Source: Ylistrum balloti (lineage: Eukaryota). From it: 64,000 bases of DNA. Position numbers and translations under genes: made by a program. A model generated the notes under the pieces. The model made no database searches. It saw only the letters and a program-made list of their open reading frames with translations, and was not told the origin of the DNA. Shown here piece after piece: positions 1 through 38,140 of this stretch; within the stretch, counting starts at the first letter, position 1; each line of letters opens with the position of its first letter. The stretch spans positions 310,001 through 374,000 of the forward strand of contig NW_026781864.1 in NCBI RefSeq assembly GCF_031769215.1, in the 5' to 3' direction.

Positions 1-684
1 TATTCTTTTAATTTGGTGGTAGACTGTTACTGGACTTTTACATATTTTTTATTTGGTTTGGTTTTTACCTAAATCTGTGTTCTTATTTTCACTCCAGTGC
101 CTATTGTTTGGTGTGATCTCTGTTTAGAACATTCTGCCATTCCATACATCATATCATCGCATAACTGCCCTGTTATCAAGACATCTATAAATTGTGTTAT
201 GACTTCAAGTGTAATAACACCAAGCAGTGCTGTAATTGGCTGAAGGTTCAATAGCTATTTAATTTGTCTAATCTTGTCAGTCGGATAAAATATGTTTTCA
301 CGAATACTCACTAAAGTATATTAGGTATATGATAAACAGAAGCTTGTTATTCTTTTCCATTTGTTTTAAGATTTATGGAGCTTTTTCATTTGACCTTACC
401 TGAGTCTCTGTGAAATCAAAAACCTAAGATTCATTTCCTCAATTTTATATGAAATGGAAACAAAAGATCCAGCCTAATGATAAGTTAAAAAGAACAAAGC
501 CATACACTTTAAACAGTAAATAATTTATTTTGAGTTGAAGAAATTATAAAGCTGTTATGCGGATTTCCAGTCCTTTTTATTATATGTGTTTAATTTTGTA
601 ATGTGACATTGATTGAAAATAAAATATTGTTTAAATAAACAATATTGGAGTGAGCATCACACTTTTGAGGACTTTACCACTGTA

Positions 685-3600
685 AAAAGTACTGGAGTGA
701 GTACCACATTGTTGGAAACAGTACCAATATTAACAGTACAGGAGTGAGTACCACACTGTAGGAAACAGTACTACTATTAACTGTACAGGAGTAAGTACCA
801 CTATTAACAGTACAGGAGTGAGTACCACTATTAACAGTACTGGAGTGAGTACCACTATTAACAGTACAGGAGCGAGTACCACAATTAACAGTACAGGAGT
901 GATTACCACGATTAACAGTACAGGAGTGAGTACCACTCTGTCGAAAACAGTACCACTATTAACAGTACAGGAGTGAGTACCACTATTAACAGTACAGGAG
1001 TGAGTACCACGCTGTAGGAAACAGTACCACTATCAACAGTACAGGAGTGAGTACCACACTGTAGGAAACAGTACCACTATCAACAGTACAGGAGTGAGTA
1101 CCACTATTAATAATACAGGAGTGAGTACCACTATTAACAGTACAGGAGTGCGTACCACTATTAACAGTACTGGAGTGAGTACCACACTGTAGGAAACAGT
1201 ACCACTATTAACAGTACAGGAGTGAGTACCACTATTAATAGTACAGGAGTGAGTACCACTATTAACAGTACAGGAGTGCGTACCACTATTAACAGTACTG
1301 GAGTGAGTACCACACTGTAGGAAACAGTACCACTATTAACAGTACAGGAGTGAGTACCACTATTAATAGTACAGGAGTGAGTACCACACTGTAGGAAACA
1401 GTACCACTATTAACAGTACAGGAGTGAGTACCACTATTAACAGTACTGGAGTGAGTACCACTATTAACAGTACAGGAGCGAGTACCACAATTAACAGTAC
1501 AGGAGTGATTACCACGATTAACAGTACAGGAGTGAGTACCACTCTGTCGAAAATAGTACCACTATTAACAGTACAGGAGTGAGTACCACACTGTAGGAAA
1601 CAGTACCACTATGAAGAGTACAGGAGTGAGTACCACACTGTAGGAAACAGTACCACTATTAACAGTACAGGAGTGAATACCACTATTAATAGTACAGGAG
1701 TGAGTACCACTATTAACAGTACAGGAGTGTGTACCACTATTAACAGTACTGGAGTGAGTACCACACTGTAGGAAACAGTACCACTATTAACAGTACAGGA
1801 GTGAGTACCACTATTAATAGTACAGGAGTGAGTACCACACTGTAGGAAACAGTACCACTATTAACAGTACAGGAGTGAGTACCACTATTAATAGTACAGG
1901 AGTGAGTACCACACTGTAGGAAACAGTACCACTATCAACAGTACAGGAGTGAGTACCACACTGTAGGAAACAGTACCACTATTAACAGTACAGGAGTGAG
2001 TACCACTATTAATAGTACAGGAGTGAGTACCACTATTAACAGTACAGGAGTGCGTACCACTATTAACAGTACTGGAGTGAGTACCACACTGTAGGAAACA
2101 GTACCACTATTAACAGTACAGGAGTGAGTACCACTATTAACAGTACTGGAGTGAGTACCACACTGTAGGAAACAGTACCACTATTAACAGTACAGGAGTG
2201 AGTACCACTATTAATAGTACAGGAGTGAGTACCACACTGTAGGAAACAGTACCACTATCAACAGTACAGGAGTGAGTACCACACTGTAGGAAACAGTACC
2301 ACTATCAACAGTACAGGAGTGAGTACCACACTGTAGGAAACAGTACCACTATTAACAGTACAGGAGTGAGTACCACTATTAACAGTACTGGAGTGAGTAC
2401 CACACTGTAGGAAACAGTACCACTATTAACAGTACAGGAGTGAGTACCACTATTAATAGTACAGGAGTGAGTACCACACTGTGGGAAACAGTACCACTAT
2501 CAACAGTACAGGAGTGAGTACCACACTGTAGGAAACAGTACCACTATCAACAGTACAGGAGTGAGTACCACACTGTAGGAAACAGTACCACTATTAACAG
2601 TACAGGAGTGAGTACCACTATTAACAGTACAGGAGTGCGTACCACTATTAACAGTACTGGAGTGAGTACCACACTGTAGGAAACAGTACCACTATTAACA
2701 GTACAGGAGTGAGTACCACTATTAATAGTACAGGAGTGAGTACCACTATGAAGAGTACAGGAGTGAGTACCACACTGTAGGAAACAGTACCACGATTAAC
2801 AGTACAGGAGTGAGTACCACGATTAACAGTACAGGAGTGACTACCACGATTAACAGTACAGGAGTGACTACCACGATTAACAGTACAGGAGTGAGTACCA
2901 CTATTAATAGTACAGGAGTGAGTACCATGATTAACAGTACAGGAGTGACTACCACGATTAACAGTACAGGAGTGAGTACCACACTGTAGGAAACAGTACC
3001 ACTATGAAGAGTACAGGAGTGAGTACCACACTGTAGGAAACAGCACCACGATTAACAGTACAGGAGTGAGTACCACACTGTAGGAAACAGTACCACTATG
3101 AACAGTCCAGGAGTGAGTACCACACTGTAGGAAACAGCACCACGATTAACAGTACAGGAGTGAGTACCACACTGTAGGAAACAGTACCACTATGAACAGT
3201 CCAGGAGTGAGTACCACACTGTAGGAAACAGCACCACGATTAACAGTACAGGAGTGAGTACCACGATTAACAGTACAGGAGTGACTACCACGATTAACAG
3301 TACAGGAGTGAGTACCACACTGTAGGAAACAGTACCACTATTAACAGTACAGGAGTGAGTACCACGATTAACAGTACAGGAGTGAGTACCACGATTAACA
3401 GTACAGGAGTGACTACCACGATTAACAGTACAGGAGTGAGTACCACGATTAACAGTACAGGAGTGACTACCACGATTAACAGTACAGGAGTGAGTACCAC
3501 ACTGTAGGAAACAGTACCACTATGAAGAGTACAGGAGTGAGTACCACACTGTAGGAAACAGTACCACTATGAAGAGTACAGGAGTGAGTACCACACTGTA

Positions 3601-3965
3601 GGAAACAGTACCACTATGAAGAGTACAGGAGTGAGTACCACACTGTAGGAAACAGCACCACGATTAACAGTACAGGAGTGAGTACCACACTGTAGGAAAC
3701 AGTACCACTATGAAGAGTACAGGAGTGAGTACCACACTGTAGGAAACAGTACCACTATGAAGAGTACAGGAGTGAGTACCACACTGTAGGAAACAGCACC
3801 ACGATTAACAGTACAGGAGTGAGTACCACGATTAACAGTACAGGAGTGACTACCACGATTAACAGTACAGGAGTGAGTACCACACTGTAGGAAACAGTAC
3901 CACTATGAAGAGTACAGGAGTGAGTACCACTATTAACAGTACAGGAGTGAATACCACCATTAACA
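685..3965. repeat. Compound minisatellite: 27-bp unit interspersed with a 20-bp unit
   Basis: Unit A CACTATTAACAGTACAGGAGTGAGTAC and unit B CACACTGTAGGAAACAGTAC alternate irregularly. The minus-strand ORFs (VLTPVLLIV)n are its translation. Confidence 0.97.
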
Positions 3966-5154
3966 GTCTTGGAGGGATACTTCATTGTAGAAAACAATAC
4001 TTCAACAATACAAGAGTGACAACTACACTGTAAGGGATTGATAATTGCTACACAAAACACCATTTTAGTTATGTGTTAAGGGTAAGTGGAAGCAGGAAGG
4101 TTTTTCTCGATTCCCCCCAATAACCTCCTAAACTGTAATTGTTTATTTTCCATTGGAATTCTCTATAGGATGCTAGTCTGACGTCATGGCAGAATGCCAC
4201 GTCAATAACTGACAAGTTTTACAGCCTTCAGCCTATATATGTTATATTTTAGTCAACTAATTTCTCTAGAAATAGAACTAAGCCATTTGGCTACAACACT
4301 CTGCTAGTTTTCAGGGTCATATTTTTAAACAGAGCCTGCAGCAGGTGACACTCTTTAACTTTGAGGGTTTGTCTTAGTCGCAGTCTGCCATCAATAATGA
4401 TTTTTACTTGATTTTCACCACAAGAATTCAAGGATGGAATAGACAGCCTACAGCTAAACTGTCAGGTGGGAACCAGACATTCTCATCTACTTTGTTGTGG
4501 AGAGTTGGCGATTAGACTGTCATGACTAAAACGCTGTCGTTTCTTGTGTGTGCAATGAGCCAAAATCCCGAGAATTTAATCAAGTTGTCAACTGTTCTGA
4601 ACATGGAATTGTGTTTTTCAAGATGAGACTGATAAATGGTCTGACCTGCTCATCTTTGTTACTACATTTTATTTAAAGCTTTATTTTTCTCATCTTGTCA
4701 AACGGATAAGAATAAATTAGTCCTGTAATTAATATCCAATCTCTGTTAATGAAATATCTGATGTCTGGCTATAATTGAATATAGTCACAGGTTGTCTCAA
4801 GATGTCAAGGTTATTACAGGTTCATTCCCTGGAGGTCAACGGTCATTCAAATTAAACTTACTCTAGTTTACAACTATTGCAAAACCAGTTTTTCCAACTT
4901 ATATTAATTACTGTTGTTGGCACATATGGATACCATAGTATCTAGGGAAATTCCAGCTAGTTGGGCAAGTGATCACACACCCTTTCATGTCCGTTCCTGG
5001 AGTCAAACCTCTGGATACCACTCTGACACCCAAATCAACCACTCTAGTTCCACAAATAGAAGATCATTCTGTAGAGGTCAGGGGTCACTAGTTCATGATC
5101 TTTAGATGTCAGGGGCCATTGCGTTATATCATTATTATACATCAAGGACAACTA

Positions 5155-8100
5155 GAAAGACAGTGTCTGGTGTAGAGGGAAGGACAGTGTCTGATGTAGA
5201 TGGAAAGACAGTGTCTGGTGAAGTGTGAAAGACAATGTCTTGTGAAGAGGGAAAGACAGTATCTTGTGCAGAGAGATCAACAGTATCTGGTGAAGAGGGA
5301 AAGACAGTATCTGGTGAAGAGGGAAAGACAGTGTCTGGTGTAGAGGGAAGGACAGTGTCTGGTGAAGTGTAAAAGACATTATCTGGTGTAGAGGGAAAGA
5401 CAGTATCTGGTGAAGAGGGAAAGACAGTGTCTGGTGTAAAGGGAAGGACAGTGTCTGGTGAAGTGTAAAAGACATTATCTGGTGTAGAGGGAAAGACAGT
5501 ATCTGATGAAGAGGGAAAGACACTGGCTAGTGTAGAGGGCAAGACAGTGTCTGGTGTAGAAGGAAAGACAGTATCTGGTGAAGTGGGAAGGACAGTGTCT
5601 GGTGAAGAAGGAAGGCCAGTATCTGGTGTAGAGGGGAAGACAGTATCTGGTGAAGTGGGAAGGCCAGTATCTGGTGTAGAGGGAAAGACAATATCTGGTG
5701 AAGTGGGAAAGTCAGTATCTAGTGAAGTGGGAAAGACAGGGAAAGACAGTATCTGGTGAAGTGGGAAAGAAGACTGGTGAAGTGGGAAAGAGTATCTGGT
5801 GAAGACAGTATCTGGGAAAGACAGTATCTGGTGTGAAGTGGGAAAGACAGTATCTGGTGTAGAGGGAAAGACAGTATCTGGTGGGAAAGACAGTATCTGG
5901 TGTAGAGGGAAAGAAAGACTGGTGAAGTGGGAAAGACAGTATCTGGTGAAGTAGAGGGAAAGACTGTATCTGGTGTAGAGGGAAGGACAGTGTCTGGTGA
6001 AGAGAGAAGGCCAGTATCTGGTGTAGAGGGAAAGACAGTATCTGGTGACGTGGGAAGGACGGTGTCTGGTGAAGAGGGAAGGCCAGTATCTGGTATAGAG
6101 GGAAGGACAGTGTCTGGTGTAGAGGGAAAGCAGTGTCATGTGTAGAGGGAAGGAGAGTATCTGGTGAAGTCAGAAAGACACTGGCTGGTGAAGTGGGAAA
6201 GACAGTATCTGGTGTAGAGGGAAAGACAGTATCTGGTGAAGTGGGAAAGACAGTATCTGGTGAAGTGGGAAAGACAGTATCTGGTGAAGTGGGAAAGACA
6301 GTATCTGGTGAAGTGGGAAAGACACTGGCTGGTGAAGTGGGAAAGACAGTATCTGGTGTAGAGGGAAAGACTGTATCTGGTGTAGAGGGAAGGACGGTGT
6401 CTGGTGTAGAGGGAAAGAAAGTGGCTGGTGAAGTGGGAAAGACAGTATCTGGTGTAGAGGGAAAGACTGTATCTGGTGTAGAGGGAAGGACAGTGTCTGG
6501 TGAAGAGAGAAGGCCAGTATCTGGTGTAGAGGGAAAGACAGTATCTGGTGACGTGGGAAGGACGGTGTCTGGTGAAGAGGGAAGGCCGGTATCTGGTATA
6601 GAGGGAAGGACAGTGTCTGGTGTAGAGGGAAAGCAGTGTCATGTGTAGAGGGAAGGAGAGTATCTGGTGAAGTCAGAAAGACACTGGCTGGTGAAGTGGG
6701 AAAGACAGTATCTGGTGTAGAGGGAAAGACAGTATCTGGTGAAGTGGGAAAGACAGTATCTGGTGAAGTGGGAAAGACAGTATCTGGTGAAGTGGGAAAG
6801 ACAGTATCTGGTGAAGTGGGAAAGACATGTCAGGTGTAGATGGAAGGAGAGTATCTGTTGTAGGGGGAAAGACAGTATCTGGTGAAGTGGGAAAGACAGT
6901 ATCTGGTGAAGTGGGAAAGACAGTATCTGGTGAAGTGGGAAAGACAGTATCTGGTGTAGAGGGAAAGACAGTATCTGGTGAAGTGGGAAAGACATGTCAG
7001 GTGTAGATGGAAGGAGAGTAGGGGGAAAGACAGTATCTGGTGAAGTGGGAAAGACAGTATCTGGTGAAGTGGGAAAGACAGTATCTGGTGAAGTGGGAAA
7101 GACAGTATCTGGTGTAGAGGGAAAGACAGTATCTGGTGAAGTGGGAAAGACAGTATCTGGTGTAGTGGGAAAGACAGTATCTGGTGAAGTGGGAAAGACA
7201 TGTCAGGTGTAGATGGAAGGAGAGTATCTGTTGTAGGGGGAAAGACAGTATCTGGTGAAGTGGGAAAGACAGTATCTGGTGAAGTGGGAAAGACAGTATC
7301 TGGTGTAGAGGGAAAGACAATATCTGGTGAAGTGGGAAAGTCAGTATCTGGTGAAGTGGGAAAGACAGTATCTGTTGTAGGGGGAAAGACAGTATCTGGT
7401 GAAGTGGGAAAGACAGTATCTGGTGTAGAGGGAAAGACTGTATCTGGTGTAGAGGGAAGGACAGTGTCTGGTGAAGAGAGAAGGCCAGTATCTGGTGTAG
7501 AGGGAAAGACAGTATCTGGTGACGTGGGAAGGACGGTGTCTGGTGAAGAGGGAAGGCCAGTATCTGGTATAGAGGGAAGGACAGTGTCTGGTGTAGAGGG
7601 AAAGCAGTGTCATGTGTAGAGGGAAGGAGAGTATCTGGTGAAGTCAGAAAGACACTGGCTGGTGAAGTGGGAAAGACAGTATCTGGTGTAGAGGGAAAGA
7701 CAGTATCTGGTGAAGTGGGAAAGACAGTATCTGGTGAAGTGGGAAAGACAGTATCTGGTGAAGTGGGAAAGACAGTATCTGGTGAAGTGGGAAAGACACT
7801 GGCTGGTGAAGTGGGAAAGACAGTATCTGGTGTAGAGGGAAAGACTGTATCTGGTGTAGAGGGAAGGACGGTGTCTGGTGTAGAGGGAAAGAAAGTGGCT
7901 GGTGAAGTGGGAAAGACAGTATCTGGTGTAGAGGGAAAGACTGTATCTGGTGTAGAGGGAAGGACAGTGTCTGGTGAAGAGAGAAGGCCAGTATCTGGTG
8001 TAGAGGGAAAGACAGTATCTGGTGACGTGGGAAGGACGGTGTCTGGTGAAGAGGGAAGGCCGGTATCTGGTATAGAGGGAAGGACAGTGTCTGGTGTAGA

Positions 8101-8650
8101 GGGAAGGACAGTGTCTGGTGTAGAGGGAAAGCAGTGTCATGTGTAGAGGGAAGGAGAGTATCTGGTGAAGTCAGAAAGACACTGGCTGGTGAAGTGGGAA
8201 AGACAGTATCTGGTGTAGAGGGAAAGACAGTATCTGGTGAAGTGGGAAAGACAGTATCTGGTGAAGTGGGAAAGACAGTATCTGGTGTAGAGGGAAAGAC
8301 AGTATCTGGTGAAGTGGGAAAGACATGTCAGGTGTAGATGGAAGGAGAGTATCTGTTGTAGGGGGAAAGACAGTATCTGGTGAAGTGGGAAAGACAGTAT
8401 CTGGTGAAGTGGGAAAGACAGTATCTGGTGAAGTGGGAAAGACAGTATCTGGTGAAGTGGGAAAGACAGTATCTGGTGTAGAGGGAAAGACAGTATCTGG
8501 TGAAGTGGGAAAGACAGTATCTGGTGTAGTGGGAAAGACAGTATCTGGTGTAGAGGGAAAGACAGTATCTGGTGTAGAGGGAAAGACAGTATCTGGTGAA
8601 GTGGGAAAGACAGTATCTGGTGAAGTGGGAAAGACAGTATCTGGTGACGT
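5155..8650. repeat. 24-bp purine-rich minisatellite with higher-order blocks
   Basis: Unit GACAGTATCTGGTGAAGTGGGAAA and variants. The (GKTVSGEV)n ORFs are frameshifted by 23-bp variant units. Confidence 0.97.
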
Positions 8651-14700: not shown

Positions 14701-15506
14701 CCACAGAGAATATACAGCCTTTGTTTTAGATTACTATGACGCCGTAGCTTTAACAACAATACTTGTTTAGTAAACCAACACAGAACCTGGTGTCAAAGAT
14801 GCTTACAGAGGAGTCAGAGTCTGTTGAGGACCATAAAACTGCTTTATTCTTTATCTGTTTTGCTGATGTTTTCCTATTTTGAGACAACAACGTGGTTGTT
14901 TTTGATATTTTGAAGTAGTCAAGGCTATCAGAATCGTTAAAATAAGCAGTAGTGTAGGAGGTGCCCAATTCATAGTTTAGGTTGTGGGCTCAAGGCCAAA
15001 TTAAAAAAAAATATTTATCTAGTTTACTTCTCAGTAGAAAAAGGGTTGATTTATCTAATAACACAGCCCGTATTAACTGGTATCATAATTATATGTGACT
15101 ATGCCTACAGTATAAAGTGTCACACGGACAAGGCAGCTTAATTGTCAGGTAAAACAAATCTTAGACATCAGGATTAAAACTAAAGATTCAGAAGGATCTT
15201 TCTCTGTATGGATTACTAGAGGAATGATGAACATTATTGAGTTCTGAGACAGTAAATTATATTATAACAGAAAGGATTGGGAGCAGTGCAACATAACACT
15301 ATGTATACTGAGCAGCTTACTTCAGCTACTCAACCTCGAAGTAAACATTTTCTTTGTGTGCTTTTCTGCTTTTACAAAGATTAATTGACTTCCTAGAAAC
15401 CATTATCATCTGCTCCGTAGTATGTTAACTTTATCAAATTTCAGAATTGGTAGTTCAATATTTCTGTCTGTTTTCTGTTATTGATACCTGTTTTTTGTGT
15501 TCTCAG

Positions 15507-15611
15507 CAGTGAATCGTCACATTCTCAGAAAAGATCCAAGAAACGGCGCCGGCGACGCTCCCCTAGTTCTAGTTCTGACAGCCGATCTGCCAGCCCATCA
15601 GACAGTGACAG
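15507..15611 (+). CDS. Srrm234: Srrm2/3/4 internal exon (SESSHSQKRSKKRRRRRSPSSSSDSRSASPSDSD)
   Basis: Polypyrimidine tract with tandem acceptor TCTCAG|CAG|T and donor CAG|GTAGGT. Open, S/R/K-rich and phase 2-2 (105 nt), joining in frame to 28361. Linkage across the 12.7-kb intron is inferred from phase and composition. Confidence 0.75.
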
Positions 15612-18599: not shown

Positions 18600-20075
18600 A
18601 GAGATATTTGGAAGAAGGAGGCTGGAGATCTCGAGAAAGAGGCTGGAGATCTTGAGAAGAAGGAGGCTGGAGATCTTGAGAAGAAGGAAGCTGGAGATCT
18701 TGAGAAGCTGGGGATCTTGAGAAGGAGGAAGCTGGAGATCTTGAGAAGAAGGAAGCTGGAGATCTTGAGAAGAAGGAAGCTGGAGATCTTGAGAAGAAGG
18801 AAGCTGGAGATCTGAAGAAGAAAGGAGCTGGAGATCTTGAGAAGCTGGGGATCTTGAGAAGAAGGAAGCTGGAGATCTTGAGAAGCTGGAGATCTTGAGA
18901 AGGAGGAAGCTGGAGATCTTGAGAAGGAGGAAGCTGGAGATCTTGAGAAGAAGGAAGCTGGAGATCTTGAGAAGAAGGAAGCTGGAGATTTTGGGAAGAA
19001 GGAAACTTAAGATCTTGAGAAGAGGAGGCAAAGAATCTTTGGAAGAAGGCAGCTAAAGATTTCAGGATGAAGGAACCTGGAGATCTTGAGAAAAGGGAAG
19101 CTGAAAATCTAGAGAAGAGGAAAGCTAGAGATCTTGTGAAAGGGAAGCTAGGAATCTTTGGAAGATGAAAGCTGGAGATCTTGTGAAGGGGAAGCTGAAG
19201 ATCTAGAAAATAGGGAGGCTGGAGATCTTGTGAAGAAGGAAGATAAAGATTTTAAGAAGATAGAAGCTAAAGATCTTGTTAAGGGGGAAGCTTCAGATCT
19301 AAAAAATAAGGAAGCTAGAGATCTTGTGAAGAGGAAGCTGAAGATCTAGAAAAGAGGGAGGCTAGAGATTTTATGAAGACGGAAACTACAGATCTAGAGA
19401 TTACAGAAGCTAAGGGTCTTGATAAAGGGAAGCAAGAGACTGTTGGAAGATGGAAGCTAGAAAGCTAGGGAAGAGGGAAGCTAGAAAGCTAAGCTAGAAA
19501 GCTAGGGAAGAGGGAAGCTAGAAAGCTAGGGAAGAGGGAAACTAGAAAGCTAGGGAAGAGGGAAGCTAGAAAGCTAGGGAAGAGGGAAGCTAGAAAGCTA
19601 GGGAAGAGGGAAGCTGGAAAGCTAGGGAAGAGGGAAGCTGGAAAGCTAGGGAAGAGGGAAGCTAGAAAGCTAGGGAAGAGGGAAGCTAGAAAGCTAGGGA
19701 AGAGGGAAGCTGGAAAGCTAGGGAAGAGGGAAGCTGGAAAGCTAGGGAAGAGGGAAGCTAGAAAGCTAGGGAAGAGGGAAGCTAGAAAGCTAAGCTAGAA
19801 AGCTAGGGAAGAGGGAAGCTGGAAAGCTAGGGAAGAGGGAAGCTAGAAAGCTAGGGAAGATGGAAGCTAGAAAGCTAGGGAAGATGGAAGCTAGAAAGCT
19901 AGGGAAGATGGAAGCTAGAAAGCTAGGGAAGAGGGAAGCTGGAAAGCTAGGGAAGAGGGAAGCTAGAAAGCTAGGGAAGAGGGAAGCTAGAAAGCTAGGA
20001 AAGAGGGAAGCTAGAAAGCTAGGGAAGATGGAAGCTAGAAAGCTAGGGAAGAGGGAAGCTAGAAAGCTAGGGAAG
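18600..20075. repeat. Two related 24-bp polypurine minisatellites in tandem
   Basis: GAAGAAGGAAGCTGGAGATCTTGA array (18600-19420, decaying), followed by a GGGAAGAGGGAAGCTAGAAAGCTA array (about 19453-20075). Confidence 0.95.
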
Positions 20076-28360: not shown

Positions 28361-28543
28361 TTCGGCATTTGATGTTGAAAAAGTAAAACAAACAGAAAAG
28401 AGTAAGAAGAGTTCAATCAGCCCAAGTCACCTGCCAGAAACTTTAATAGCCAAAAAAGTCACGAGGTCAAGGTCAAAGTCTCCTAAGGTTACAAGGAGGT
28501 CACCATCATCTTCATCAGATAGCTCCCGCAGTCCAAACCTAAG
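28361..28543 (+). CDS. Srrm234: Srrm2/3/4 exon (SAFDVEKVKQTEKSKKSS...VTRSRSKSPKVTRRSPSSSSDSSRSPNL)
   Basis: Acceptor TTCGTTACAG| and donor AAG|GTAGCC; 183 nt, phase 2-2, RS/SP-rich. Confidence 0.85.
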
Positions 28544-31888: not shown

Positions 31889-31963
31889 GAAGAAAACACT
31901 GAAAACTAATGGCCATAACACAGCTTCACAACACAAACGAAGTCCCAGCTCATCTTCCTCTAG
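31889..31963 (+). CDS. Srrm234: Srrm2/3/4 75-nt exon (KKTLKTNGHNTASQHKRSPSSSSS)
   Basis: Acceptor TTTTTACTTACAG| and donor TAG|GTCAGG; phase 2-2, in frame with both neighbours. Confidence 0.75.
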
Positions 31964-32658: not shown

Positions 32659-32913
32659 GTCACCAGATCCATCCCACAAGCGCCTTAGTCGGTCTCTTAG
32701 TTACTCCCCTGCTGAAGGTCAGAAGACAAGGGAGTCAGCTGCCTCTCCTAAACTAACTTACAAATCTCCCTCCCCAGTCCCTCGACACTCACGGCCCTCA
32801 AGGTCAAGGTCACGCAGTCGCCGACACAAGTCCTCTTCATGGTCAAGGTCACGCTCCAGGACCAAGTCAAGTTCAAGATCAAGATCAAGGACACATTCAA
32901 GAAACAGAAAAAG
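32659..32913 (+). CDS. Srrm234: Srrm2/3/4 RS-domain exon (SPDPSHKRLSRSLSYSP...SRSRSRTHSRNRK)
   Basis: Acceptor TTTTACAG| and donor AAG|GTGCAA; 255 nt, phase 2-2, dense RS dipeptides. Confidence 0.9.
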
Positions 32914-34200: not shown

Positions 34201-34371
34201 GAGAAGTCGCAGTTACAGTAAGTCGAGGTCAAGGTCTCGAAGTCGCAGCCGTCGCCGTAGTTACAGCAGAAGTGCATCAAGAAGTAGGTCACGGCACCGG
34301 ATGTCTCGGAGCCCCTCAATACGACGTCGGAAGGGCTCGCCTAGTCACCTAGAGAAGCGACGTATTACCAG
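34201..34371 (+). CDS. Srrm234: Srrm2/3/4 exon: RS repeats plus N-terminal half of the eMIC (RRRKGSPSHLEKRRIT)
   Basis: Acceptor TGTTTCAG| and donor CAG|GTACGT; 171 nt. The peptide matches the SRRM3/SRRM4 motif RRRDSPSHLEARRITS (recalled, not database-searched). Confidence 0.95.
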
Positions 34372-34484
34372 GTACGTAGAATGGATTTTATGCTCCCGTT
34401 TGAATCGTTATTCCACGCAGAATTTACCACACCTCTATTACAAGATATTGGCTTGTTATTCAATTATTGGTCGCACTTCCATGA

Positions 34485-34490
34485 AATAAA
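34485..34490 (+). terminator. Candidate intronic polyadenylation signal AATAAA
   Basis: It overlaps the TAA that ends the read-through ORF from exon 34201, and GU/U-rich sequence follows. Confidence 0.45.
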
Positions 34491-35484
34491 GGAATGTGTA
34501 ATATGTATGGGCTGAAGTTATCAGTATATTTACTTAATATCAATATGTGTAGTGTAAACGAACCAAACAGTACAAGTTTTTTATGTGAATACTTTTATGT
34601 TATTATATTGAGAAACTGTATCAATATTCTAGATACCATCTTTACTCCAATAGCATTGCCAAACATGTCATTTCATTTTAATTTTTATATTTTCTTTTAA
34701 TTAAATTTTAAGTTGTTTAAATATCTATTTTCTATAGTTCAATTTTTTTTTTAATTTTTGTTGTTTTTGTTTCTTCATGTTTTTTTGTTGGATGTTGTAT
34801 ATTTTTTCTTTGATTTTCCTGTTGCTATATTTAGGACACAACATTCTGACAGGAATGTACAATCTCACACAATTGGATGTAACCTTGACTACAGGGGTCT
34901 AGTGTGAGGAGACAATTCAGGGGAGGCCACTCTCATAAAATTAAGCAGTCTGGTATATATTTTACCTGGAATGGAGTACATCTTTATATCTTGAATGAAG
35001 ATAGCCTTGTACTAACAAGTGCCCCAGGCTAAAACACTAATATTTCTAGGAATTGAGCTACATGTCCATTGCTATGTCAGACAAATGGGTTTGACTGCTG
35101 CATTATCATATATATACGATTTGCTTCAGAATGTATCCGAACTGTCAAACTATAAATACTAACCAATCATTAGAGGATAAATACAGGAACGAAAAACATG
35201 CTACATAAGCGTTCTAATTTGAAAAAATTTTTAACCAAATTTACTTTCATTATACGTTAACTTAAGTTCACTTTTGAAATTGTATCACAGATGTGACACA
35301 TATATAGTAAGAGATTGGGAGACAGATAGATCTTACTGAAAATATATTACTGTAACAGGTTTGATAACAACAGATTTTATCATTGTATGAAAGACGGAAA
35401 TCAATATAAAATAAAAGATATATCTCATTCACTGCTAACACTGACACTCTCACACCAATAATAAAAGTTAAACTTTTACACTGT

Positions 35485-36062
35485 ACTTACACTCACTCCC
35501 TCACAACAAATTAGTAAAACTTTTACACAATGCTAACATGGAAATTAACTTTCAACTCACTCCCTCACAACAAATTAGTAAAACTTTTACACAGTGCTAA
35601 CATGAAAATTACCTTTCAACTCACTCCCTCACACCAAATTAGTAAAACTTTAACACAGTGCTAACATGAAAATTACCTTTCAACTCACACCCTCACAACA
35701 AATTAGTAAAACTTTTACACAGTGCTAACATGAAAATTACCTTTCAACTCACTCCCTCACAACAAATTAGTACAACTTTTACACAGTGCTAACATGAAAA
35801 TTACCTTTCAACTCACTCCCTCACACCAAATTAGTAAAACTTTTACACAGTGCTAACATGAAAATTACCTTTCAACTCACTCCCTCACAACAAATTAGTA
35901 CAACTTTTACACAGTGCTAACATGAAAATTACCTTTCAACTCACTCCCTCACACCAAATTAGTAAAACTTTTACACAGTGCTAACATGAAAATTACCTTT
36001 CAACTCACTCCCTCACACCAAATTAGTAAAACTTTTACACAATGCTAACATGAAAATTAACG
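35485..36062. repeat. 64-bp minisatellite, about 9 copies
   Basis: CTCACTCCCTCAC at 35492, 35556 and onward. Confidence 0.95.
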
Positions 36063-37343
36063 TTCACACCACTAACTTAATTTCTGCATGCTTTTCTTTG
36101 TAACAATGACTCGATGTGTTAAGGGACCTTGTTTCATTAACACTTGTCTGTGTTTTACCTGATCATTATGATGACAAATCACCCCTTGTCTGTGGTCTGT
36201 TTTGTGTTTTAAAGTCAAGCTTCATCAAATCACCCCTTGTCTGTGATCTGTTTTTTTGTTTTAAAGTCAAGCTGTGGTCTGCTGTCCATTGTTTGTGTCA
36301 TATGAATTTTTCTTCTGGTTGAAATCAAATAACAGTGAAGTTGTGGTTTTCTGTAAAAGCACAAATTTTCATCTCCACAAAAACATTTGATTAAATGTAT
36401 TGGCACCTGTGAAATTCCCTTTAAGATAATGTGCTACTCTTTTCTTGTCTTTGTTTTGCTTCGTAAAAAATGAATTTCTAGTTTCTAGTCGAATGTTTTT
36501 GATGATAGTAATAATTGCACACATCTAGGTATGTGTCCTTCAGCTGCTAGACTTCTGCCTATTGGTACACTAGCACACAGCAGTAAGAATATTAAAATCT
36601 TGTATGCTTCTGTAAACATCGTCAGGTATTCTATACTGCTCTGTAAAAATCATATTTTGTGGTGTTTCAGTTATAAATTGGCATTGTGCTTTCTCTGCCA
36701 TATTTAGAATAACTGAAGAAATATGTCAACATTATGATAAAACAGAAATTATGAGAATGAAACAGTAAAACGAAAAAACCATCAGTATCCATTTTAGGGA
36801 AACACAGAAAAATCCTTGATACAATAACATGTTTTTAGCATACATATGTGCTATCATGGTGAATAAAATATGTGATCGTCACTGTGATGTTCAAATCATG
36901 ATTGATTAATGTGTTGAATTGATATGCCATTTGCCTAATGCCATTTTTTCAAATAACAGATCTTCTTGATCAGATTCCAGACTACTAACACTCTTGTAAA
37001 ATATTTATGTTACTGTGGATGGTATATAGATATATATATATATGTAGAACCTTGCATGAGTTTCCATGCCATGTTATTAAGCCTCACTAGCGGGCCTCTA
37101 GCAGAGCTAAAACTAATTTATAAACAGGTTCATAATACAATATAGAGAGAAGCAGTGGTTATCATATGATAAATTCTTTTGACAAACACTGTTGAACACA
37201 TTATTTTCCATGTAAAATTTTCCTTTATGTGTAAATAATCAGATATGAGAATATTATTTCTGTCAAACAATTTGAAGATGAAGTAACAGTTTGCAGAATT
37301 TGGTTATTTGCCAATAATGTATTTACTTTTAATTTTCATTTAG

Positions 37344-37509
37344 TGCCAGAAAACGCCCAGTACCGTACTATCGGCCAGCCCCACCCTCCCCGAGCTCAGT
37401 CAGTAGTTACGACTCGTACTATCGGTACAGCCGCTCACGCAGTCGGTCTAGACCCAGGTATCGCACACGCAGCAGGAGCTTCTCTCGGACACGACGACAC
37501 AAGAGCTAA
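37344..37509 (+). CDS. Srrm234: Srrm2/3/4 terminal coding exon: C-terminal half of the eMIC (S|ARKRPVPYYRP) plus RS tail, stop TAA
   Basis: Acceptor TTTTCATTTAG|. AG+T forms Ser in frame with exon 34201. ARKRPVPYYRP matches ARKRPIPYYRP of vertebrate SRRM3/4. The stop is at 37507-37509. Confidence 0.95.
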
Positions 37510-37614
37510 CATATGACTTTCCTTGATTCAACATATTGTCAATATAACAATAAAACGGTGAAATATTTTGCACATAAGAACATTTACATGTAAATAAATG
37601 ATAGGAATGTTTTA

Positions 37615-38140
37615 GAATCATAGCAGGGTGCTTCCACGTACCTGTTATTAATGGGAATATTGATGGGAAATTGTGATTTGGAATCATTGTAGGAGACTTT
37701 CATGTACCTGTAACTAATTTGAATATTGATGGGAAATTGTGATGCGGAATCATTGTAGGAGACTTTCATGTACCTGTAACTAATTTGAATATTGATGGGA
37801 AATTGTGATGCGGAATCATTGTAGGAGACTTTCATGTACCTGTAACTAATTTGAATATTGATGGGAAATTGTGATGCGGAATCATTGTAGGAGACTTTCA
37901 TGTACCTGTAACTAATTTGAATATTGATGGGAAATTGTGATGTGGAATCATTGTAGGAAAATTTCACATACCTGTTATTAATGGGAATATTGATGGGATG
38001 TTATGATGTGGAATCATTGTAGGAAAATTTCATGTACCTGTTATTAATGGGAATATTGATGGACAATTATGATGTGGAATCATTGTAAGAGACTTTCACG
38101 TAGCTGTAACTACCGGTAATGGGAATATTGATGGGATGTT
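37615..38140. repeat. 66-bp minisatellite just downstream of the Srrm234 stop codon
   Basis: GAATCATTGTAGG at 37681, 37747 and onward. Confidence 0.93.

Follow-up and report, generated by a model that had tools for sequence, protein, structure and literature searches.

Background

Does the scallop Ylistrum balloti encode a complete enhancer of microexons (eMIC) domain, and how could its production be controlled if only one gene carries it? This domain acts as the master switch for the splicing of neural microexons and is known to occur throughout the bilaterians. In vertebrates, it is restricted through the transcription of distinct paralogues, whereas in the scallop it belongs to the single ancestral gene, so that its control must be post-transcriptional. 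Among the papers searched, none links the eMIC to molluscs.

The domain contacts U2AF1/2 and SF1, and in non-vertebrates it is the processing of the Srrm234 3' end that confines it to neurons (PMC8797185 and its reference 15). In the fly, the exons that encode the eMIC flank a proximal poison exon, which is skipped under the action of Elav/Fne, proteins that bind UUUNUUU motifs, and a proximal poly(A) site is also used; expression of the eMIC outside neurons is harmful in this organism (PMC8797185).

We analyzed a stretch of 64,000 nucleotides of the Y. balloti genome, called the window throughout, in which an initial annotation made from the letters alone had noted an intact eMIC domain in a probable mollusc Srrm2/3/4 gene.

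Results and discussion

Gene model and orthology

The + strand of the window contains a chain of exons with phase-2 AG|GT boundaries (15510-15611, 28361-28543, 31889-31963, 32659-32913, 34201-34371, and 37344-37507). The last two, named exon A and exon B, are described in the next section. The upstream exons, with their identity to the SRRM2-like protein of the scallop Mizuhopecten yessoensis, are as follows:

15510..15611, + strand: upstream Srrm234 exon, K/R/S-rich, with phase-2 boundaries; 97% to M. yessoensis residues 243-275
28361..28543, + strand: upstream Srrm234 exon; 79% to residues 276-337; acceptor ...gttacag, donor AG|GTAGCC
31889..31963, + strand: upstream Srrm234 exon; 85% to residues 337-363; splice sites read
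32659..32913, + strand: upstream Srrm234 exon, RS-rich; 82% to residues 362-455; acceptor ttttacag, donor AAG|GTGCAA

Exon A is 98% identical to residues 447-504 of the same protein, so that five consecutive exons of the window match M. yessoensis SRRM2-like in order (97, 79, 85, 82, and 98% identity). At the start of the first of these exons is a tandem acceptor, cag|cag (15505-15510), of which the second AG agrees with the M. yessoensis protein; use of the first would lengthen the product by one Ser.

A profile of the exon A motif was searched against 1.84 billion representatives. This search gave 57 matches, including one complete protein from Haliotis asinina, which then served as the query in a word search. 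The orthologues named in this way are from Haliotis, Pomacea, Lymnaea, Aplysia, Saccostrea, Mytilus, Solemya, Dreissena, Mya, and Mizuhopecten yessoensis. In those of Haliotis, Saccostrea, Mytilus, and Solemya, a cwf21 domain and the Pfam domain SRRM_C occur together. We sought cwf21 exons across the window both by motif and by tblastn and found none; therefore, the 5' half of the gene must be upstream. Judged from these alignments, the window contains the 3' half of the scallop Srrm234 orthologue, and the exon identities of 79-98%, together with the mollusc orthologues that carry both cwf21 and SRRM_C, uphold the assignment to a mollusc Srrm2/3/4 gene that had been proposed as probable.

An eMIC reading split over two exons

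The features at the 3' end of the gene are as follows:

34201..34371, + strand: exon A, with an RS stretch and the first eMIC half (...SRSPSIRRRKGSPSHLEKRRIT, then the AG of a split Ser); evidence from SRRM_C and identity to M. yessoensis
34372..37343, + strand: phase-2 intron of 2972 nt that splits the eMIC; GTACGT donor, ...tttag acceptor; same intron position in Mytilus
37344..37507, + strand: coding part of exon B, from the third base of the Ser codon through ARKRPVPYYRP and the RS tail to the stop at 37505-37507; evidence from SRRM_C and alignment A2
37549..37598, + strand: two AATAAA hexamers, candidate poly(A) signals, 42 and 86 nt past the stop; AATAAA occurs at about chance frequency in the window

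By direct reading, codons 34322-34369 of the + strand give RRRKGSPSHLEKRRIT, which ends in RRIT and is followed by AG at 34370-34371. The consensus donor GTACGT stands directly 3' of the exon A end at 34371, and the pyrimidine-rich acceptor ...ttcatttag has its last base at 37343. The first base of exon B, a T at 37344, completes the split codon AG|T, which encodes Ser. Exon B then reads ARKRPVPYYRP, PPSPSS, and an RS-rich tail, in this order, before the TAA at 37505-37507. Codons, splice sites, and stop codon thus bear out the spliced reading of the initial annotation, in which ARKRPVPYYRP is followed by an RS tail. The annotation was also right that the list of open reading frames misses the second eMIC half. 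This half is not listed because the eMIC frame of exon B lacks a start codon; the sole listed open reading frame at this location, 37343..37516, is in another frame.

The description of the domain as intact stands, with one qualification. The eMIC core residues are all kept, but, with ...RTRRHKS (37480-37507) as its last residues in the eMIC frame, the product stops about 10 residues short of those of other molluscs and a crinoid, before the terminal R-S-W-S motif of other mollusc models. This motif, which is near the C-terminus in the other molluscs and the crinoid, is absent from the window tail, and none follows in any frame. Up to that point, the product resembles the mollusc models in NCBI, in which PPSPSS, DSYYRY, and RS repeats are conserved for 20-30 residues more.

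Domain identity and conservation of the junction

The initial annotation had proposed a check against the Pfam model SRRM_C (PF15230), which has 67 profile positions and a gathering cut-off of 27 bits. We scored the exons one by one and obtained matches on both. Exon A matches profile positions 4-55 (25.0 bits, E = 2.9e-5), and exon B matches positions 57-67 (13.2 bits); each score is below 27 bits alone, and their simple sum is approximately 38 bits, which is a rough figure given that the exons were scored separately. The position between the two matches, 56, is the split Ser codon, and these adjoining profile coordinates agree with the proposed division of the eMIC over the last two exons. 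For comparison, the scores of complete spliced orthologues from four molluscs are 23-51 bits, with matches that extend to position 67 of 67, whereas in cassette isoforms, which do not have the second eMIC half, the match ends at position 55 of 67, as that of exon A does.

The invariant residues are all present in the window, both in the first half (alignment A1) and in the second (alignment A2), and the core residues GSPS-L--RRIT and S-ARK-P-PY-RP are both kept. A phase-2 intron directly after RRIT is present in the window (34371|34372) and in Mytilus genomic DNA. The eMIC core of the predicted product is therefore encoded by the last two exons of the gene. Vertebrate SRRM3 and SRRM4 have the same domain, with the same core residues, C-terminal position, and RS tail as in the scallop. 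Three differences from the human motif that the initial annotation had offered as testable turn out to be the normal mollusc state: in the sample compared, the window has KG, K, and V where deuterostomes have D, A, and I, the echinoderms among them.

Relatives also speak to the position of the junction. All 57 profile matches are spliced or diverge exactly after RRIT, and in about a third of them RRIT is followed by S-ARKRP(V/I)PY. In the spliced relatives (twelve or more), consecutive residues map to window position 34369 and then to 37342/37345, and in abalone, oyster, mussel, and sea hare the gene models use the same junction between exon A and exon B. The sequence RRIT-S-ARKRPVPYYRP is the same or nearly so in Haliotis asinina SRRM2-like X1/X2, Saccostrea echinata SRRM2-like, Mytilus edulis SRM300, Aplysia californica SRRM4 X2, and Lymnaea stagnalis. 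Because abalone, oyster, and mussel have the identical 12 residues, S-ARKRPVPYYRP, in their spliced products, and because the residues of spliced relatives map across this junction, chance is excluded as the source of the eMIC reading. By analogy with these relatives, the junction is presumably also used in Y. balloti. Exon B alone gave no match in a word search, a result made uninformative by the short query. With exon A, the word search returned only genomic read-through open reading frames, and two of their contigs do not contain exon B; in the contigs of relatives, conservation stops at the exon A donor.

The initial annotation regarded the domain itself as known, which is the case, given that eMIC-bearing mollusc models are present in NCBI. 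The eMIC is already known both across bilaterians and in these public models, and this locus adds the scallop copy.

A candidate cassette exon between the eMIC halves

Two further features lie within the eMIC intron:

34715..34834, + strand: T-rich tract directly upstream of the cassette acceptor; 64% T, 7 TTTNTTT motifs
34835..34952, + strand: candidate cassette (poison) exon of 118 nt (1 mod 3), with an in-frame TGA at 34905-34907; evidence from mapping of M. yessoensis isoforms

In M. yessoensis SRRM2-like X1, X2, and X4 (XP_021346347.1, XP_021346348.1, and XP_021346350.1), which are the isoforms that we compared, a tail of 73 residues replaces SARKRP, and none of the three bears the eMIC. 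Residues 1-38 of this tail map to the window intron at 34836-34952 (residues 27-38 to 34917-34952), and residues from 39 onward map to exon B from its first base, 37344, with the frame shifted by one. It follows that the cassette is part of the X1, X2, and X4 mRNAs, in which exon B is translated in a shifted frame. The window has the corresponding splice sites, an acceptor (tatatttag|G) and a donor (CTG|gtatat), at places homologous to those of the M. yessoensis gene, an orthologue with 79-98% identity over five exons. In its coding content the cassette is not conserved: it is open in M. yessoensis (115 nt) and contains an in-frame stop in the window (118 nt). Its frame-breaking property is conserved, with both lengths being 1 mod 3. 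The M. yessoensis models, all of which include the cassette and lack the second eMIC half, have an odd N-terminus without cwf21, and one of them spans 189 kb; these characteristics suggest a faulty 5' end in the M. yessoensis annotation.

A comparable arrangement exists in Mytilus edulis. In its genomic DNA, 7.4 kb separate exon A from exon B; they are joined directly in two annotated isoforms, and a third includes a 26-nt cassette (2 mod 3) in the same intron and reads exon B out of frame. At the level of DNA and orthologues, then, an optional exon that breaks the frame is found between the eMIC exons in both lineages (118 nt in the window, 26 nt in Mytilus). The candidate cassette between the eMIC halves in a scallop, with its putative Mytilus counterpart, is new in this report. 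In the genomic sequence examined, the M. edulis cassette (64412-64437) is directly preceded by a weak pyrimidine tract, and a T-rich block lies at -240 to -121. The presence of a poison exon of microexon size inside a microexon regulator suggests possible feedback.

In gastropod models, the eMIC form is paired with an alternative RS-type tail, whereas in bivalves it is paired with a frame-shifting cassette. A search of the window for an alternative RS tail exon of the gastropod type gave only low-complexity matches to known exons.

The T-rich tract upstream of the scallop cassette is in the top 0.9% of 120-nt windows and may reach into 34676-34714. It may serve as a site for an ELAV-type protein, and it could equally be a strong polypyrimidine tract.

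Selection on the reading frame of exon B

The M. yessoensis proteins read exon B in the annotated, out-of-frame register, from which we reconstructed the underlying nucleotides by parsimony, taking the nearest compatible codon at each of 35 positions. This procedure yields 21 nucleotide differences between the window and M. yessoensis, all of which are silent in the eMIC frame. Of the 21, 20 fall at the first codon position of the annotated frame, which is the third codon position of the eMIC frame, and the remaining one is part of a synonymous CGG/AGG change. The asymmetry between position 1 and position 2 is significant (binomial p = 1e-5). Expressed as residue changes, the comparison gives 20/35 in the annotated frame and 0/34 in the eMIC frame, where the latter value is a lower bound, given that a second-position change in the eMIC frame goes unseen when it leaves the annotated residue the same; the asymmetry is unaffected by this limit. 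In the window, moreover, the annotated frame of exon B meets a stop after 20 codons.

From these inferred nucleotides, we conclude that purifying selection acts on the eMIC reading of exon B. Therefore, the mRNA in which the cassette is skipped must matter in scallops, even though the X1, X2, and X4 models omit it. This silent-site evidence, which points to the unannotated eMIC reading as the selected one in scallops, is also new here.

Proposed mechanism

We consider it very probable that the window carries the 3' half of Srrm234, with the eMIC encoded over its last two exons and with a cassette exon between the two eMIC halves. Under this explanation, splicing from 34371 to 37344 would yield a protein whose C-terminus consists of an intact eMIC core and an RS tail. 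Judged by its homologues, fly Srrm234 and vertebrate SRRM3/4, such a protein would recruit early spliceosome factors (U2AF and SF1) to very short neural exons. When the cassette at 34835-34952 is included, translation would instead stop within the cassette in the window, or run into exon B out of frame in M. yessoensis, and the resulting protein would keep general SR functions without the second eMIC half. We assume, by analogy, that inclusion is the default outside neurons. Skipping in neurons, which an ELAV-type protein bound to the upstream T-rich tract may promote, would then turn the eMIC on.

Among the closest known systems is Srrm234 of Drosophila melanogaster (CG7971; PMC8797185). Like the scallop gene, it is a single gene in which the first eMIC half is in a shared exon, with a donor that faces alternative acceptors. 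Both have a frame-breaking exon between the eMIC halves and U-rich motifs nearby. In Drosophila, the proximal exon is a poison or alternative last exon, and the distal last exon carries the eMIC half; the scallop cassette is unrelated in sequence and is known from DNA and orthologue models.

Alternative explanations

The eMIC could instead be switched off without any cassette, by read-through of the donor at 34371 and intronic polyadenylation, to give a product that ends 39 residues into the intron. The exon A frame does stay open as far as a TAA (34487-34489) that overlaps an AATAAA (34485-34490), and the fly gene offers a precedent in its use of a proximal poly(A) site (PMC8797185). However, AATAAA is close to its chance frequency in this AT-rich window (122 found versus 102 expected, with four on the + strand of the eMIC intron), the read-through end is in none of the mollusc isoforms retrieved, the M. 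yessoensis isoforms splice to the cassette instead, and the contigs of relatives show no conservation past the donor. We therefore regard this route as unlikely. More improbable still is that the M. yessoensis cassette is an artefact of annotation or splicing noise, and that the eMIC form is constitutive in Y. balloti. Doubts about the models that define this exon arise from their odd 5' end without cwf21 and from the unconserved coding content of the exon, with its in-frame stop in the window and diverged middle. Against an artefact, two scallops whose exon B sequences differ at more than half of the silent sites have both cassette splice sites and the flanking codons in common, the length stays 1 mod 3 (115 and 118 nt), and a frame-breaking exon is present in the same intron in Mytilus and Drosophila. 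A constitutive form would also be difficult to reconcile with the harm done by the eMIC outside neurons in flies (PMC8797185).

The opposite extreme is that scallops no longer make the eMIC isoform, such that exon B is read only out of frame and what it encodes in the eMIC frame is a relic. In favor of this view, the three M. yessoensis isoforms retrieved all contain the cassette, and the tail in the window is shorter than in other molluscs. Yet a relic would not give 21 of 21 differences silent in the eMIC frame alongside residue changes at 20 of 35 positions in the annotated frame, and it is this annotated frame that is broken in the window, by the stop after 20 codons. We judge a relic to be highly improbable. 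The explanation that we prefer remains an eMIC that is made when the cassette is skipped.

Implications for bivalves and other protostomes

A broader proposal is that bivalves in general gate the eMIC by a frame-shifting cassette (118, 115, and 26 nt in the cases above), with neuronal skipping brought about by an ELAV-type protein on a T-rich tract. We advance this tentatively, as an idea that is somewhat more doubtful than probable. If it is true, the poison-exon switch of the fly type would be an ancestral protostome device, perhaps a bilaterian one, and not an insect one, and the microexon-sized cassette of Mytilus would let the eMIC feed back on its own production. The cassette at 34835-34952 provides a concrete candidate for the neuronal restriction of microexon splicing in a lophotrochozoan, which can be compared with the fly mechanism. 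In addition, the exact exon coordinates of the scallop eMIC enable annotators to recover the predicted neural isoform that is absent from the sister-scallop models X1, X2, and X4.

Tandem arrays in the locus

Several tandem arrays accompany the gene. One with 9 copies of 64 bp (35491-36066) is within the eMIC intron, and one with 7.3 copies of 66 bp (37631-38112) begins just past the candidate poly(A) signals. Farther upstream are large, purine-skewed arrays at 675-3967 (27/47-bp units), 5155-8647 (24/48/72-bp units), and 18602-20075 (24-bp units). These three arrays sit in presumed long upstream introns, and their long open reading frames are repeat artefacts.
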